Shown piece by piece: positions 44-9,915 of a DNA stretch of 64,000 nucleotides. Location of the stretch: assembly GCA_965637545.1 (NCBI GenBank), contig OZ281497.1:14818001-14882000 (forward strand), given 5' to 3'. Every line of letters starts with the position of its first letter. Positions within the stretch are counted from its first letter, which is position 1. Origin of the DNA: Phallusia mammillata (Eukaryota). The position numbers and the translations under genes are program-made. The notes beneath the pieces are model-generated. The model did no database searches. It saw only the letters and a program-made list of their open reading frames with translations, and was not told where the DNA came from.

Positions 44-427
44 CATGTCGTTATCGTCCACAGGTGGCTTATACAGTCCACGAATTACACCAGACTTCAG
101 TTCGGTTTCAGTGCAGTAGTACATGTCAGCGTTCCTCATCATTCCGTCTGAGGACAGTGCAGTTGCAACATACTCGCCAGATGTGGCGCCAATGATCTCA
201 AATTTAAACTTGTCTTCGGCTGCTTGCTACAAGTTACAAACTTTTTAGAATTGGTAACTAATTGAGGTTACACCGATAAGATATATCTTACGTGAACCCA
301 GGTTGTCAAAATACAACTCGAATCTCCTGTTTGGCAACCTGGAGGAAAGCGAAAACATCCTTTGGTTTTGCCGCAGCCCTCGGCGTCTGGTACCGATGTT
401 GAGGCTGAACTTTGAGCGTTTCTGTTC
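44..427 (-). other. DOMON unit 5 (first two exons; the rest lies outside the window)
   Basis: EGCGKTKGCFRFPPGC ... DGMMRNADMYYC. Confidence 0.85.
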
Positions 428-3400
428 CTGCAAAATTGATGGTTTAAGGAACTGGCAACATGTCAAATGCAGGTATTGTTTCATGTTTGTTTTCCTAAAA
501 TATACACGGCACTTATAATTGCCTAATAAGCTTTATGTTATTGTGTAACTATACCCATACAGACTGCATGGTAGTGAAAGGTGTGGTGTGAGAAAAACTT
601 AAAAGAGTGATTTTTTCATTTAAAGTAAGATAAATCTCCGCACGAACAAAAAATATCATCCACCCACTTTTCAGTCGATAAAGTTTGTCCTGGGGTGGCG
701 GGAGCTGAGGTAGGAGAAAAAGATTGGGAAACAGCAACTTCAGTATTCACTGTGGTTGATATTAATGGATATGTGGACGAACTTGATCTTGTTGACAAGC
801 TTGAGACTGGCGTTGAACTTGTCGATTCCATTTCAGCAGTAAGTGTCGACGTCATAGCGTTAGAATTTGTGGGGTTCGATGAAGGTATAACTTGAGTCAA
901 AAAGCTGGAAGGCGAACTAGGGGTTGGTGTCGGTGATGCGCTTTGAAGTACAAATCATATTTTATAATTCTCATAACCTGAAGAGGATGTGTGTAGGAAT
1001 CTGTGATATTGTTTGAAGGATTGCCCGAGGGCACGTTGTCTTGTTTACTGGTAACTAGATACAAAAGAGAACTTTATTTGCTCTCTTTCGGAGGCAGTTA
1101 ACACAAATTGTTCGAAATTGTCCTGCAATTGTCCTGACGAAAAACGAAACCCAGTCAAACTTACGTGTTAGCTGTGACCGACTCGACTGAAACGAATTTT
1201 GTCAAGTTGCTCGACCATCGATCCACGCCATGATATAACATGGAATTACCTATGTGCAAAGTCAAAACAACAGTTAGAGGAAGGTTTTAGTTTGTTTTAG
1301 CTATCTTTAAAGGAAAGTTTTTTTACCATCCTGTAGCTTAAAGCGGTTGTTTACTTTTCAAATTGAACCATACAAAATCTGCTACAACGCTTTGAATTTT
1401 TTTTATCTTATAAATGTAAAACTAAAGAAACGCCCTTTTATACAATTGGTTCCCATTCATATACCAAGATAAGCGCCTGATGCAAACAGCACGTGATATG
1501 AATTTGAAACCAAGTCAAATGCGACCGCTTTGTTTTGACTGATTGTTTTAGTCAAGCTTCTTGCTCGACGGAAGCGACATTGTATGACTTCATTGTTAGT
1601 CGCTGCACTGGGCATTGAAATTCCAACCTGCACACAAAAGTTACATCAGTACCAACATTTATCAATTGTCAAAATCATTTACCGGTAGAGTTGAGTCTTC
1701 GATAGGATTTGAATAGCGACCTCGAATAACCCCAGATTTTAGTGCACCGCGAGTGCAAAAATAAAGATCAGCGTCCTGCATTTGTGTGCTTGTTGACATG
1801 GCAACAGCCACGTACTTTGGCATGACCCCAATGTTGCCGCGGATTTGCATGTCAAATGTCTCGCCGACTTTATCCTGGAAACATATTTGGTCTGCAATCA
1901 TTAATTTTGTCTGACGCTGACGAGTTGATGTTTTACCGAAATGGCAGAGCCCGCGGTTTCATTACACACGTCTGCTGCCACACTTACGTAGTTCCAGGAA
2001 AGTATGATGCAATTTGGTTGGTTCACTGTGCAGTTCGGAATGTTGCTCATGCATTCTGCGTAACCTCCACACTTTGGAGGCGTCGTCGCTGAGCTTGTTG
2101 GCATCGCAGTCGTCATGGTTTTTGTGGTTGAAACGATTGTTGTCGTGGTAGAAACGACTTCACTTATTCTGTGAGTGTATGCAAATTTAAGCAAAATCCG
2201 TGCAACGAAGTTTCACCATACAAGTAAATCATACGTTGTTGCAGCGGTCGGTGTTGTGGAAAAACCATTCATGAAGTTCACTGGTGGCGAAGACCAACGC
2301 TGTTGTTGGTGGTATAGAAGCGTCCCACCTAGAACACACAACCCAAATTAATTGGTACAATACCGGGCCGATGATAAGCTACATGAATTTTTAGTAGCAG
2401 CTTTCGAAACGTTACTCGGATCAATCGTTCAAATCACAAACTGCTGCATTTTATAAACAGTCGACGCCCAATTTTTGAATACATACTTCATTTTGTATCA
2501 TTAGTTTTTAGACAGCAGTGCATCAGCATGTGTATCGAAATTGCAATGCTCGCTTGGATGTGTAAATGTCGATTAAATCCGCTCTTTGTTCAATGCACTT
2601 ACCAGCATATGAGCCAATTGCGAAAAGCACGTGAAACGATTCCGCTAACAAGTCAAACGATTTGGGTTGTCCAGTTTGATCCGTTCTAGTTATCGATACA
2701 GGTCTTGTAAAAGAACAAGTCACTTTTCCGTTTGTGGACACTACACCGTTTGACACGACGCCAGCCTTGAAAGCAAAACATAAACTTTAAAATTACTTCA
2801 TTCCGGATTACTCTCGATGGCAACAATTAATTAAGTATCAAAGAGTGCCATATGGGTGTGGCAAGCCGAAAACTACAGCGTCATTATAACGAATAGCATT
2901 TAATTTGTAAATTTGAAGTAAATTAACCCTTAGTGGTAAGACTGGGGGTGAATCTCTGGTCTCAAGAAAGTAAGATTCGAGAATTTTTCTCATTAAGTTC
3001 ACACGTAAAGTTTTATCTGCATAGTAACCGCATATTATATAATGTTAATACTAACCGGCAAAGTAGCATCAAGAATTGGGCTAACATACAAGGATTGTAT
3101 TGTTCCCGAACCAAGATTTGAAGCAGTACAGTAATATAGATCTGCATCCTGCATTGTAGGTGACGAAGCAAATGCAATTGCCACATATTCCGTATCGGAC
3201 AGTGCACCAACACTTATCTCCATTTCGAAATTATTTACTTCTGCTACCTGTTGATTTGTTGTACAAAATTTTGAGCTTGTTTTTTGTTAAATAATATTTT
3301 TAAACGCTGGACTTACGTAGCGGGATGATAAAGTGACACAACCACTACTTGTTGTCGAGCAGTTGGGAATGTTACTGACACACAACTTGGTTGTCCCACA

Positions 3401-6400
3401 TTCATCACCGGGTGTGGTTGAGATGGCGGATGCCAGTAAGGGTGTAGTTGACGTTCTGTTTTAGAACAAAAGTTTGTTAACATTGTATCCGTAGTTACGT
3501 GTTTTTTTGGTTGTCCTTACGTGGTTTCGAACCCAGAATCTAAAGTCTATAGAACAGAACCTTGAATACACATCTACACATTTCTTGCATATTTAATGAA
3601 TGCCGCTTCTTACATATATCACAGGTTTGTTCGCTACCAAGTTTTTTCTCATGATTAACTAATGAAGTAACATATACAGAGCATCTTTCGCTCTCAAATG
3701 TGTTCCTTAGGGCCGCGAGTTTTGGCACTCGCCCAATATTTTGTCAACATCCGGAGTAGGCCACTTTATCACTGTTTTTACTAAAGCTGCAAGTGCCTCT
3801 ATTTCCCATAGTCTTAGCAGTAAAGCCCAGTCGTGTTTCATATTACTGTTCGTGAGATTGTTTGTCAGTCATGCAGTGACTGTATGTATTATTTAGTGGG
3901 ACGATTAACTTTGCTCTGGCGTGAAAAGGGGGTGAACGCCTCGACAAAAGGGACTTACAAAAAGGTGGCAGCATGTCAACCACCATGCCATGCATAATCC
4001 ATGTGCTCTCGGGACAGGATTGTGGAATCACACGGATAAGTGTAGACGCTTGAGTAATTAACACCCAGAAAAATTGTCGACGCAATTAAGCGTTTTCCAG
4101 CACCGCAATTATTACCTTGTTTCGTTTTGAGGTGGTGGAGCCAAGAAGCCCGTCGTGTAATTGAGCGACGAGGGTGAGAACCAACGGAGATTGAAATGAT
4201 ACTGCAAATTTCCACCTACCAGGTGTAATGATATGGAGTATAATGTTAAATGCCACTCAACGCTTTATTTAATTAATTATGACATGTGCGCCATATCAAG
4301 TATTGGAAGGAAGACTTAGCACTTTAATGGTTACAACTGCCTTACATCTTTAGGAAATGGCGTTGCTCAAATAAAACAATGAAGAAAGCAACTGTAATTT
4401 TTACGAGACATAAAAACAACCACGAAAGACGAAATGGAATTTTGTTTCGCTGGAAACAATTTGAATACACAGTACCTGGATATAAACCAATCGCTGAAAG
4501 TAAATGAAACTCGGCGGAAGACAAGTCAAATATAGTTTGGCTTCCATCACTGGCCGTTCGTGTCACCGATGACGGTCTGGTAAACTTGCATGTCGTCATG
4601 CCATTGGTCGAGTCGCCGTCAGTGCTCAAAACCCCGGTCTGTCAAAAATATTCAGGGAGTTTCAAGCCTGCATCAACGCATCTCAATTTTTTTCCATATT
4701 TGACAAATGTTATGTTTTTGACTGTTAAATTGAGGTTATGTCATTAGTCGAGACAAACGAAACGCATTTGCGTAGAATTGGGATTCCCAGCATGATTTGT
4801 TTTTATTCAAACGAAAACATGACAACGCACAAACTGTTTGATGTAATTTTGGTTTGCGTTGCGTGACTTCCAATGTACATTATTTGCTATGACGTTGCGT
4901 ACAACCTCACACAAAGCAAATTTTCTTTTATATGAACCCGCATTAAAGAATGACACATAACTAACCGGCAAAACAGAATCAACCACAGGGGACGAGTATT
5001 GTTGTCCAATCGTCGCCGAGCCAAGTACGCCACTTGCGCAGAAATAAACGTCTGCGTTCTCCATATTTCCAGTGGGTGCGAAGGCAATAGCGATGTAACC
5101 CATGTCCAGTTCGGGTTTTCCACTTATTTCCATGTCAAAGGTTCCAGAGTTTGGATTCTAATAGAAAAGCCGAAGCAGTTAAATACTATCTTTTGTGTGT
5201 CGAAAGAGATTTAATTTGTTTTCGTTGCCCAAAGTTGAAAACAGCTCTTTTAATGATGAACAAATTTTAAAGAAATTATTAAATTCTAAACGTAACTAAG
5301 AACCTGCAAATTTATTTCCCTTAGCTTATTCTTTATACTTCAACGTATAAAACGCTTAGTTGTCATGGGCAATGCGGCATTTCTCTTGTGTCACTCGCTT
5401 GTTGACATGTTCTGGTTAGGTTGTTTGTTTGTCAAACTCGGGTTCGCATGTTAGGTATGCTGACCGAAGTTTCAAGTGTTTTACCGAACCGTGTTTTTCT
5501 CCCACACACGTGACCACATCGCGTCACAAATTTACATAACCTCTACGTGATAAAGAACACGCAACAAATTCTTTGAATACGCATACGTCTTAAACGTGAA
5601 TGCAAAAACTCACGTATTTCCAAGAAAAAAATATGCAGTTGGTGTCCCCAGGCGAACAACCGGGCGTATTTGTGTAGCATCTTTTGGTGGTGTTGCAGCC
5701 CGAAGTGATGGTAGGTGATAGCGTCGTTGTCGGGGGTATAAATGTTGCGCTATTAAAAAACATTTTTTTGCCACAAACGGCATTTTGACGCATTTTCGGA
5801 AATGACCCATGGCGTAGCCTGATAAAATCTTTTATGAGACAATTTAGGTCTTATCTAAATACCCTTAAGGTTTGATTTTTTATCTCTGCATTTTGTTTTT
5901 CTTGCTTACGTGCTTGTTTGTGGTGACGAAGATCTCAGATTCACAGCACTTGACGAAATCCATCTTTGTGTGCCGTGGTATGTCATCACATCTAGATTGT
6001 TGGAACAAAAAACACAAGTATTGTTGTTTTGTCAAACTATCGGGTTTTTATATGTTAACGATGACCAACCTGGATAAGCACTTGAAGCCAACAGCACGTA
6101 AAAATCGTCGGCGGTCAAATTGAATACTTTTGATGTATCACCGCTAATAGTTTTTGTGACACTTTCGTATCGTGTAAACTGGCACTCCGCTACCCCATTG
6201 CTTGTACTGGCGATTCCCATCGTCAAAACGTCCTGCGCACAAACACTCATTATTTATTAACGTCGAACTTAATTGCCGCTTGGGTATCGTGTGAGAAACT
6301 CTCACCGTCTCTGTGTCAGTGACCGGCATTTGATAAAGCCCCTGAATTGCTCCAGACTTCAAGCTTGTCCCGGTGCAATAGTACATGTCAGCATCTTGCA

Positions 6401-7711
6401 TCCTGTTTGTGGCGGAAAACGCTACGGCAGTGTACGTTGCCCCATTACCTGCACCACCCCTCAACTCCATGTCAAACATGCCGGTTGACTGGTTCTATAA
6501 AAACATCAAAATACGCGATTCTCAAAATGGCCTGTTTTGGGTGGTACTCCTTGTTTTCGACAGGGCAAAAAAATCCAATAGCGACAAAAAAGTAACGTGC
6601 AGAAATATAATGTTGCTTTTAACAAATGTTAAAAATATATTCAAGGGGGTTTACAAAAACCGGCCGCGAAGGCCTAAAACAGATTTGATCAACAACATTC
6701 AACGACTTTTTGAAATATATGGGTGCGTTAAGTAGCCGTCGGTAACGAGAAATGAATTTGCTTCTTTCTAAAAATATTTTTCAGTTAAATTTATATCATA
6801 AAGGAGACCGCAAAACCGAAAATAGAAAACTTCTCAAGAAGCTGTCCCAAAGCGTGGGCAGTGGTTGTGATAGATGGAATTTCTCATTAACTTTCTTGAT
6901 CTTCAATGGGACATGAAATGTGACAAGTTCTTGATTAAAAATAAGTTGTATGCTAAAAAATGTTTGTATCTTTTAAACAAAATTAAAGACATGGCGTCAA
7001 TATCGCTTAACAATTCGCATTAGACAGCACAATTATTCGGTTTTGCGAATGAGGAATATGAAAGCGACCAGTTTTTGTAAGAAAGGTTTGTAAGAAAAAA
7101 TGATCGTCACCACTGCATCATCATGACTTGATAAATACGATTGTTTCAATTTCTATGCAATATGGCTGCCAAAGAGTGGCTTGCGGCAACGGGAGTTCGA
7201 ACTGACCGATCACTGCAGCAATACGTCATTTAAGTCACGACATGAAACAGCGTGCCGCGATTTTACAGTTAATAGCCCGGGTTGTCGTAAAAATGAAATT
7301 GCACGAAAAGTGACTAAGCGTAAACCCCGGATATCGAGAAAACGAAAACATATCCAAATCATGTTTCCAAAAATAGCCCAATACAACAAGCAATGTGTTC
7401 ACGAGCATTCACCTTTAAAATTGTGGCATATCACCTCAATGGAAAATACATTTTCTCTCAAGTTTTTGCAATACTGGAAACAATCAAAAACCATGCCAAA
7501 TGTGGGTAGATGAACAATGTGTCGTTTCAAAACTATTTTTGCACGTACTTACCCAAACATACGAAAAGAACAGACATGATGAATCTGTCAGGAGGCAGTT
7601 TTGAGGAAACTTGAAGCAGGCTTTCGTTTGTCCACATCCAACGTCGCTAACGGCATTTGAAGTTTTAATACTTGCAAGTAGAAATGCCAAAAAGAAAAGC
7701 GAAACTTTCAT
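44..7711 (-). CDS. Secreted multi-DOMON protein (FRRS1/SDR2-like DOMON domains, at least 5 tandem copies); 3'-partial, continues beyond base 1
   Basis: 19 GT-AG exons give one open frame of 995 aa: 7711-7553, 6494-6306, 6232-6070, 5991-5910, 5749-5614, 5157-4966, 4638-4476, 4215-4116, 3455-3317, 3247-3056, 2765-2603, 2328-2235, 2168-1988, 1874-1683, 1627-1465, 1249-1165, 940-668, 427-292, 226-44. The N-terminus is a signal peptide (MKVSLFFLAFLLASIKTSNA). Each unit has a C-x-x-x-K/A-x-C..C..C linker (e.g. GCGQTKACFKFPQNC, GCGKTKGCFRFPPGC), F-D/E-M-E/Q-I/L, YxAxA..M-x-D/N-AD-x-Y-Y/F-C, C-x-F-x-R, and YH-x3-RW. Confidence 0.9.
668..940 (-). other. Ser/Thr/Pro-rich mucin-like spacer exon of the DOMON gene
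   Basis: 273-nt phase 2-2 exon (ASPTPTPSSPSSFLTQVIPSS...TLSTE). The donor GTGGGT at 667 is inferred from frame continuity. Confidence 0.7.
1165..2168 (-). other. DOMON unit 4, 4 exons
   Basis: KCGGYAEC ... STQMQDADLYFC ... QCRFRRA ... MLYHGVDRWSS. Confidence 0.85.
2235..3455 (-). other. DOMON unit 3, 4 exons
   Basis: ECGTTKLC ... SPTMQDADLYYC ... TCSFTRP ... LLYHQQQRWSS. Confidence 0.85.
4116..5749 (-). other. DOMON unit 2, 4 exons
   Basis: SGCNTTKRC ... TGNMENADVYFC ... TCKFTRP ... LQYHFNLRWFS. Confidence 0.85.
5910..7651 (-). other. DOMON unit 1 (Cys linker plus DOMON), 4 exons
   Basis: TNRMQDADMYYC ... ECQFTRY ... MTYHGTQRWIS. Confidence 0.85.
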
Positions 7712-9915
7712 GCTTTTTCACCTACAAGTTTACTGCAATTTTACACTGACTTTTACCTAACAACAATACATTCTAGTTAGTCTTTTTTCCAGTACTTTGT
7801 GCACTTGTTTTATTTATTAAAGGCCAACGCACATGTTTACATAAGACACCACCGTGAACTACTGTGCTGCTTTCGGTTCAGCAAATCCACTTTGCTGTGA
7901 TGAGAGAAAATTAGCGCCAACGGCGGAGTTGGTGGCCTTCTTCACGGCGGCACGTTATCAACGTCCGCAATCTGTGGACGCAATTGTCTTGCATTTATCA
8001 GTGCCCAGTCCGCCATAATAGCCGCATTTTCAATAACTGATGTCTCGGCCACTGTCTTTAATTTATCATTGCCGGGGTTGCCACACTGACCGGATTTGCT
8101 AGTTCTGGTTTTACTTTTATTCTGGTTACCTTTTTTCGAGCAATAAAAAACCTAATATTAAAAAACTTTTTGTTACAAAAGAATTTTACCTCACCCGGTT
8201 TTATGTACTTGCATGACACTCACGCTTTCAAATAATGTTGCAAAAACCAAAACTGGTTTGTTAACCTAAGTTAAAAACTAAAAGTACAACCTGGTGCGAC
8301 TTAAAGGTCTCTGTTCAAGTATGTGTATTAGGTCTACGTTTTAGCAATTAGCTTTAACTGATGTGCTATTTTACCGCATGGGTCACCATGAGATACATTG
8401 CTATGCAAACAAGAAAAAAACACGCCCAAAAAGTGCTAGTTTTCGCATCCGAGTTGGCATCCTTATGAAATTTGATATACTCAGAAATCAATTACCCTTT
8501 CCGGGCACGAAGTTTTAATTGAGTCACGATTTAAAAACTCGGCGATAATTGCATGCAGTGTGAAATCAAATTGTTTTGGGTTTAGGGTAACATGAAGCTT
8601 GGCAATCCTATTCATTATGCTCTTTTTTCGAAACATGTTTGAAAACAGGACAAAAAATAAAACGCTTTAAACGCCGCCACATAACATATGCCCTTTTAGT
8701 GGTGGAGGGGACAATGGGGGTGGTTCGATATTTATTTGATTCTTGAAAAACAGAGAAACTGCTTCACCCCCGAGCTTGAATGGCTGTATGCAGGTATACT
8801 ACCAGGGTATAGCTCGTTTATCCAATTGGGGCCTATTCTATCCGTGTCATATGAGTGCACTTTTCATGTGGCGGTGAAAACGCCCCAACGGGCCGTTGTG
8901 CCGCACCAGGGCCCATGACATAAGGGCCCCATAAATATCAAAACTTAAATGCACCCAATTACGGATAAATTCTAGTGTTTTTATAAAACTTAATAATGAT
9001 TTAGTTGTTGCCCAGTATAGCATTTTTGTTTGCTCTTTAAGGATGGCATTACGGTACAGTATATATTACATTGGCAGTACTATACACAACTCGTTGCGAA
9101 GAGCGTCCCGCACTACAATACCGTACCAAATGTCAAAACCTGGAACGTACCGCACCTGCATCAACCCCATGGGGTAGTGCACTGTCTTTGCTTATACCGT
9201 GCATTTAAATAAACTAATCTGAATCAGATTTGCACTAACGGGAGTGGTGTCTAAACAAGCCGCTCAACTGTCTTGGTGAAAATGAAGTTGTAGTTTTAAC
9301 TATATAGCGTCGATAAGATTTTTTAAGGGGTTAAAATCACATGGACGAAGTAGCCTATTGACTTGAATATTAATAGAAGGATTCTCGTCCTATACGCGAC
9401 TTTAAATTTATATTTATATTTTTCCCTTCAACTGTAACTGCAGAACAAAACAGTTACTTTCCAGACTACTGAAAACCGCTTGAGAATACTGAACAAATCA
9501 CTTTCTAGTGCTAATTTTTGTGCATGTCTTTGGTTAATCGCTATGGGAAATGTAACTGCAGCCCAAATGCACGTGTAATCATTCTTTTACAGAACGAATA
9601 CCCACGTAAGCCTGAAATATGAAGTAGTGACGTCATAAACATTTTTGACTCTAGTTTAGAAAAAAAGGCACTGCGGTAAAATCATGTGATAAACAGCTTT
9701 AAATGCAGGTTTTGGTCAATTTTCATCTGTTGCAAAAAGAAACGATGTAAAAAAGACCATTTCTTCAACATTTATTTTGCGTACCAGTACGATAGTAGGC
9801 TTTTGGTACAGTGGTATGCTTTGGTGGTGACTAGCTAAAGATTTGTGAACATTTTACGGCCACTTTGCTTACGTTTTACAATACGATTCGCGTTTACCTT
9901 TTATAACTATAACTA

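Follow-up and report, generated by a model that had tools for sequence, protein, structure and literature searches.

A 64,000-nucleotide stretch of the Phallusia mammillata genome (assembly GCA_965637545.1, contig OZ281497.1, positions 14,818,001 to 14,882,000; hereafter the window, numbered from its first letter) carries on its minus strand a spliced gene that starts with the ATG at 7711 and extends past the left edge of the window at base 1. Its product is probably a secreted, heavily glycosylated protein of at least five DOMON units that acts as an electron carrier, each DOMON most likely holding one heme b through a Met and a His. The gene is a previously unannotated member of a family that is known from databases and unstudied.

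Domain units and candidate heme ligands

The protein begins with a single hydrophobic stretch and a cleavage motif (...SNA/VSD), and since this signal peptide meets the first Cys cap at residue 26, no Reeler domain intervenes. The signal peptide is followed by four complete units and a partial fifth, each composed of a C-x5-C-x6-C-x6-C cap and a DOMON domain. A unit is approximately 166–168 amino acids long and spans a four-exon block, in the order of linker and Cys cap, first half of the DOMON with the Met, second half with a conserved Cys, and a short exon with YH-x3-RW; the four complete units share a pairwise identity of 37–47%. The motif scan and the gene model confirmed the original prediction of a signal peptide leading straight into at least five Cys cap and DOMON units without a Reeler domain, and the six-frame scan recovered the Met in all five units and YH-x3-RW in the four complete ones, as had been claimed. 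Over the whole 64 kb, regular-expression matches to the Met, YH-x3-RW, and Cys-cap motifs in six frames are confined to this gene (Table 1).

When 99 full units of the relatives were aligned, seven columns reached at least 90% conservation, namely four Cys, one Tyr, the Met (95/99), and the His (96/99), and all seven are intact in the four complete units of this gene. The consensus of the loop around the Met has S at −5, D/N at +2, D/S at +4, and C at +8, while an Arg lies 3–5 residues past the His in many of the 99 units. The Met–His spacing within the units of this gene is 91, 93, 93, and 93 residues, with the Arg at His+4. In Drosophila CG8399, the predicted heme ligands Met286 and His379 were aligned to the ligands of cellobiose dehydrogenase (CDH) and are accompanied by Arg383 and the motif SxDxxMGxD (PMC10691727); the resulting spacing of 93 and the Arg at His+4 are the same as in the units of this gene. 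The pair of heme-ligand type that had been noticed in every copy is therefore near-invariant in the relatives as well, and such near-invariance in approximately 100 tunicate and echinoderm units implies strong selection on the putative heme ligands. The CXXCH heme c motif of multi-heme c-type cytochromes is absent from the 995 amino acids of the gene model, so any hemes would be non-covalent and b-type, one per domain.

The linkers between the units are 33, 39, 51, and 124 amino acids long, with a Ser/Thr/Pro content of 51–64%, and the protein has eight N-x-S/T sequons for N-glycosylation. A 273-nt exon (668–940) codes solely for Ser/Thr/Pro-rich linker, the spacer between units 4 and 5 being 124 amino acids long compared with 33–51 elsewhere. 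The mucin-like linkers and the eight sequons would also fit a non-redox glycoprotein of the extracellular matrix or tunic, with a role in adhesion, sugar binding, or heme sequestration or storage, in which the Met and His would serve ligand capture or would be ancestral. The DOMON superfamily reportedly has sugar-binding and adhesion members (Iyer et al. 2007, as cited by others), and coral DOMON proteins are classed under matrix/adhesion. However, the Met/His pair is missing in sugar-binding DOMONs and in DBH (PMC10691727), and the strong selection implied by its conservation in the relatives likewise speaks against a non-redox role, which is regarded as rather unlikely.

The assignment to the DOMON family also held when searched with Pfam PF03351, which was matched by single exons. 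Positions 12–74 of the profile were matched by the second exon of every unit (E 9e-7 to 5e-5). Of the four third exons scanned, two matched positions 82–124 (E 0.04–0.05). Together, these profile matches are far beyond chance. Similarly, a hidden Markov model built from the four spliced units retrieved proteins with PF03351 scores of 57–272 bits in two to eight matched stretches, and a language-model atlas likewise indicated DOMON and CDH-cytochrome clusters.

For the fold, AlphaFold2 was run on a unit of a relative (P0002:28-198, 46% identical to unit 1) using the 99-unit alignment. The all-beta model (pLDDT 96.2, pTM 0.92) has the beta-sandwich common to the DBH DOMON and the CDH cytochrome domain, and matches the heme-binding CDH cytochrome domains (PDB 1d7b, 4qi3, 4qi6, and 4qi7) in fold at 10–14% identity. 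Alignment of model residues 1–171 to residues 5–175 of 1d7b brings Met60 near CDH Met65 and His154 within approximately five residues of CDH His163. We take Met65 and His163 to be the heme ligands of the CDH cytochrome domain, a numbering credited to Hallberg et al. 2000. DBH, which is heme-free, scores as well as CDH in the fold comparison, so the case for heme rests on ligand conservation and not on the fold. Searches of PDB sequences gave chance matches or none, whether the query was the second-exon profile, the 99-unit profile, or P0005, a tunicate CYBDOM; the link to solved structures is by fold comparison only.

Transcript evidence and gene model

The window is free of any N. A run search found 14 sequencing runs holding part of the stretch; in the RNA-like runs (the kind being guessed by the tool), approximately 0.3 of the sampled words were present, which equals the exon share, while two DNA runs held 0.97–0.98. 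Contigs of the RNA-like runs X1, X5, and X11, which belong to three studies, and of the DNA run X9 were aligned to positions 1760–7759. Thirteen introns are skipped exactly in the X1, X5, and X11 contigs, all of them CT..AC on the plus strand and hence GT..AG on the minus strand, and the X9 contigs are colinear with the genome and retain the same 13 segments. The locus is a real and expressed gene, and transcripts show its splicing at these 13 introns. Two exonic positions differ by a single base, probably as alleles: 2036 reads C>T in an X11 transcript contig, and 2686 reads C>A in the DNA run X9.

Below 1760, the placing of five further exons (15–19) relied on AG/GT sites, on the continuity of the reading frame, and on homology with units upstream. 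Joined together, the exons encode 995 amino acids with zero stops, and the frame has not closed by base 44. Of the 4,362 nt of the X1 contig, the gene model accounts for 3,031 nt, leaving approximately 1,331 nt of transcript to the left of the window; the full protein would thus have at most approximately 1,438 amino acids, with five or perhaps six units and a terminal part.

The product of the gene is not among the 1.84 billion representative proteins searched, where the best full-length identity is approximately 35%, and this absence could speak for a mistaken annotation or a decaying array of repeats with no functional gene. Such a reading is opposed by the spliced transcripts from three independent studies, by the frame of 995 amino acids without a stop, and by the conserved Cys, Met, His, and Tyr, all intact in each unit, and it is considered highly improbable.

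Table 1. Exons of the multi-DOMON gene, with the motifs they encode, in window coordinates.
Feature	Position	Strand	Basis
Exon 1: 5′ untranslated region 7757-7712, ATG 7711, signal peptide (approximately residues 1-21), unit 1 four-Cys cap (7636-7574)	7553..7757	-	X1/X5 contigs begin at 7757 and splice 7553 to 6494
Exon 2: unit 1 DOMON first half, Met motif MQDADMYYC 6401-6375	6305..6494	-	Transcript joints; Pfam DOMON profile 16-74, E 9.8e-6
Exon 3: unit 1 DOMON second half, conserved Cys (C.F.R)	6070..6231	-	Transcript joints; unit alignment
Exon 4: unit 1 end, YHGTQRW 5980-5960, start of linker 1	5910..5991	-	Transcript joints; motif
Exon 5: Ser/Thr/Pro linker 1, unit 2 Cys cap 5697-5635	5614..5749	-	Transcript joints; motif
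Exon 6: unit 2 DOMON first half, Met motif MENADVYFC 5064-5038	4966..5157	-	Transcript joints; Pfam DOMON E 1.1e-6
Exon 7: unit 2 DOMON second half	4474..4638	-	Transcript joints; Pfam DOMON profile 82-108, E 0.052
Exon 8: unit 2 end, YHFNLRW 4201-4181, start of linker 2	4116..4213	-	Transcript joints; motif
Exon 9: linker 2, unit 3 Cys cap 3400-3338	3314..3455	-	Transcript joints; motif
Exon 10: unit 3 DOMON first half, Met motif MQDADLYYC 3154-3128	3055..3244	-	Transcript joints; Pfam DOMON E 8.8e-7
Exon 11: unit 3 DOMON second half	2601..2764	-	Transcript joints; Pfam DOMON profile 85-124, E 0.039
Exon 12: unit 3 end, YHQQQRW 2314-2294, start of linker 3	2235..2326	-	Transcript joints; motif
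Exon 13: linker 3, unit 4 Cys cap 2071-2009	1987..2168	-	Transcript joints; motif
Exon 14: unit 4 DOMON first half, Met motif MQDADLYFC 1781-1755	1683..1873	-	Acceptor confirmed by transcript; donor 1683 placed by GT and frame; Pfam DOMON E 4.5e-5
Exon 15: unit 4 DOMON second half	1465..1627	-	Boundaries predicted from AG/GT, open frame, homology to exons 3, 7, 11
Exon 16: unit 4 end, YHGVDRW 1235-1215	1165..1249	-	Boundaries predicted; motif
Exon 17: Ser/Thr/Pro-rich mucin-like linker, most of the 124-residue linker 4	668..940	-	Boundaries predicted, frame joins exons 16 and 18; composition
Exon 18: end of linker 4, unit 5 Cys cap 375-313	292..427	-	Boundaries predicted; motif, frame
Exon 19: unit 5 DOMON first half, Met motif MRNADMYYC 139-113; gene runs on past base 1	44..226	-	Alignment with the four equivalent exons

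Relatives, C-terminal end, and proposed role

A profile of the five Met-bearing second exons was searched against the same 1.84 billion proteins and matched 115 of them, the best relatives being from Phallusia, Clavelina, Styela, and Ciona savignyi, in keeping with the tunicate origin. Arrays were found in several tunicates. For instance, P. mammillata CAB3247152.1 (P0001, named "putative ferric-chelate reductase 1") has eight units in 1,457 amino acids and Clavelina lepadiformis proteins, including CAK8680834.1 and XP_076811719.1, have four to six units, in both cases with no b561 by Pfam; Styela clava proteins have three to four units and a hydrophobic C-terminal tail, which in Styela P0003 and P0119 is of the glycosylphosphatidylinositol type. 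The tunicate CYBDOMs consist of two units and a cytochrome b561 in P0005 (Phallusia), P0008, P0127, and P0128, and of one unit and a b561 in the C. savignyi fragment P0025; the first unit of a tunicate CYBDOM is 47% identical to unit 1 of this gene. Among echinoderms, Amphiura XP_072017628.1 (P0007) has six units and a b561, while Apostichopus XP_071846071.1 and Anneissia XP_033111693.1 have three units each. Unnamed transcript contigs carry up to eight units and a b561, including P0024 with eight DOMONs and a b561 and P0014 with six DOMONs and the beginning of a b561. A word-based search with P0005 returned four proteins, FRRS1 and CG8399 not among them. In addition, a 627-bp marine metagenome contig (ENA ERZ909262; L001:95-343) encodes an 82-amino-acid piece (P0026) that is 72% identical to the Met exon of unit 1, and probably comes from a related tunicate, as environmental DNA.

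In a quick FastTree of tunicate units, unit 1 of this gene groups with the first units of all relatives, while units 2–4 fall with internal units from the arrays of Phallusia and Clavelina, apart from the b561-proximal type. The six units of Amphiura cluster together, which suggests that its array expanded separately, and the arrays of different species appear to have expanded partly independently. Judged from deposited sequences, the multi-DOMON architecture is a family trait of tunicates and echinoderms and is not peculiar to this locus. The view that it is special to this animal was thus not sustained, arrays of three to eight DOMONs having already been deposited from both groups.

The strongest competing explanation concerns the end of the protein. 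The window may hold the ectodomain of a multi-DOMON CYBDOM whose b561 lies to the left of base 1, which would make the protein an ascorbate-driven transmembrane ferric reductase like FRRS1/SDR2 or CG8399, its heme DOMONs extending from the membrane as a long chain. Multi-DOMON relatives with a b561 do exist (Amphiura XP_072017628.1, P0024, and P0014 with its b561 start), as do the tunicate CYBDOMs with two DOMONs and a similar first unit, and the transcript beyond the window is long enough to complete unit 5 and to add a b561 and a 3′ untranslated region. In the 995 amino acids seen, however, there is no cytochrome b561 and no hydrophobic segment of transmembrane grade after the signal peptide. 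Five tunicate relatives with a b561 were found, each with no more than one or two DOMONs, whereas those with at least three units mostly terminate either in a short hydrophobic tail or directly behind their last DOMON. Moreover, the internal units of this gene cluster with those of array proteins and not with the b561-proximal type, and linkers of up to 124 amino acids would leave a long distance between the outer hemes and any heme in the membrane. From these comparisons, a secreted or lipid-anchored end is judged the likelier one and a b561 end unlikely, and the transmembrane reductase as a whole is given a minor but real share of the probability.

In the preferred explanation, that of a secreted poly-DOMON electron carrier, each unit would consist of the four-Cys cap and a DOMON beta-sandwich of the CDH cytochrome, CYBDOM, and AIR12 type, with heme b ligated by the Met of the S-x4-M-x-D/N-A-D..C loop and the His of YH-x3-RW. 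The domains would then work as separate b-type cytochromes outside the cell, strung along extended tethers that are probably O-glycosylated. Single electrons would be taken from ascorbate or from a b561/CYBDOM protein in the membrane and handed on to acceptors outside cells, for example ferric chelates or other proteins; these donors and acceptors are ones that we infer. The array probably arose by tandem duplication of the four-exon block, and the gene would correspond to the 8-unit protein of Phallusia and to the Clavelina proteins of 4–6 units.

The original prediction had also raised the possibility of a multi-heme electron relay. The part of this claim that stands is that the Met/His pair of heme type is kept in all copies; a fixed heme-to-heme wire is improbable in this protein because of its flexible mucin-like linkers, and multivalent one-electron carriers, diffusible or tethered, fit the gene better. 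A relay is more conceivable in the Phallusia and Clavelina relatives with nearly abutting units. As a speculation to which only a small probability is attached, a soluble or tunic-embedded "poly-cytochrome b" on a mucin-like tether could act as an extracellular electron shuttle, which might feed LPMO-like copper domains on tunic cellulose, much as CDH supplies LPMOs in fungi, or might reduce Fe(III)/V(V) outside cells.

Several points weigh against the electron-carrier explanation. Heme occupancy and the redox role are predicted from sequence. The boundaries of exons 15–19 are likewise predicted, and the C-terminus lies beyond the window, so that what is called secreted could be membrane-anchored. 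In addition, the single-exon Pfam scores of 26–30 bits are under the gathering score of 32.7, the domain being split by introns, and the modeled unit is that of the relative P0002 and not one of this gene.

To our knowledge, the heme DOMON proteins characterized so far carry one heme DOMON. A survey of insect cytochromes b561 regards even two DOMONs as rare (PMC10691727), and full-text literature searches found no paper with more than two DOMONs in one protein. A multi-DOMON CYBDOM with six to eight heme-type DOMONs and a C-terminal b561, as in P0007, P0024, and P0014, is not described in the literature searched. The proposed connection with vanadium and iron accumulation gained no evidence from these searches, in which DOMON or ferric-chelate reductase genes were not linked to ascidian metal handling and nothing relevant was found for DOMON in tunicates. 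Marine deuterostomes (tunicates and echinoderms) build arrays of three to eight heme-type DOMONs with strictly kept ligands. If every domain is heme-loaded, no larger extracellular array of b-type cytochromes would be known from animals, and the arrays would offer a tractable system for the role of DOMON cytochromes outside cells. For annotation, the locus gains a gene model that transcripts support, for a protein that the public sets searched do not contain; the practical value stays modest until heme binding, the anchoring of the C-terminus, and the tissue of expression have been established.

Comparison with known systems

The closest likeness is to Phallusia CAB3247152.1 and the Clavelina arrays, which share the signal peptide, the lack of a Reeler domain, the tandem Cys cap and DOMON units, and the kept Met and His. 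They differ in sequence, with an identity of approximately 35% over the full length and 38–47% per unit, and in spacing, their units being nearly abutting with 5–20 amino acids in between, whereas mucin-like linkers of 33–124 amino acids separate the units here. These array proteins have automatic names only and are unstudied. The echinoderm multi-DOMON proteins of Amphiura, Apostichopus, and Anneissia are also arrays, of three to six units with conserved Met and His, but share only 23–29% identity with this gene, and the Amphiura protein ends in a b561.

The CYBDOMs, including vertebrate FRRS1/SDR2, Drosophila CG8399, and plant CRR/HYP1, have the same DOMON subtype, with the S-x4-M loop, a spacing of approximately 93, and the Arg at His+4, and the tunicate members P0005, P0127, and P0128 are direct sequence relatives of this gene. 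They have one DOMON, rarely two, fused to a b561, with an N-terminal Reeler domain in the animal ones, whereas this gene has no Reeler domain, at least five DOMONs, and no b561 within the window. The CDH cytochrome domain (1d7b, 4qi3, 4qi6, and 4qi7) is more distant, with no sequence-level match to a unit; it is a fungal single domain that is joined to a flavodehydrogenase and has no four-Cys cap at its N-terminus. The best functional analogue is the plant glycosylphosphatidylinositol-anchored AIR12, which is likewise extracellular and DOMON-only, without a b561. AIR12 reportedly binds an ascorbate-reducible heme b (Preger et al. 2009, as cited by others). Unlike the protein of this gene, AIR12 is single-domain and plant-specific, and the two are likened by function and not by sequence comparison.

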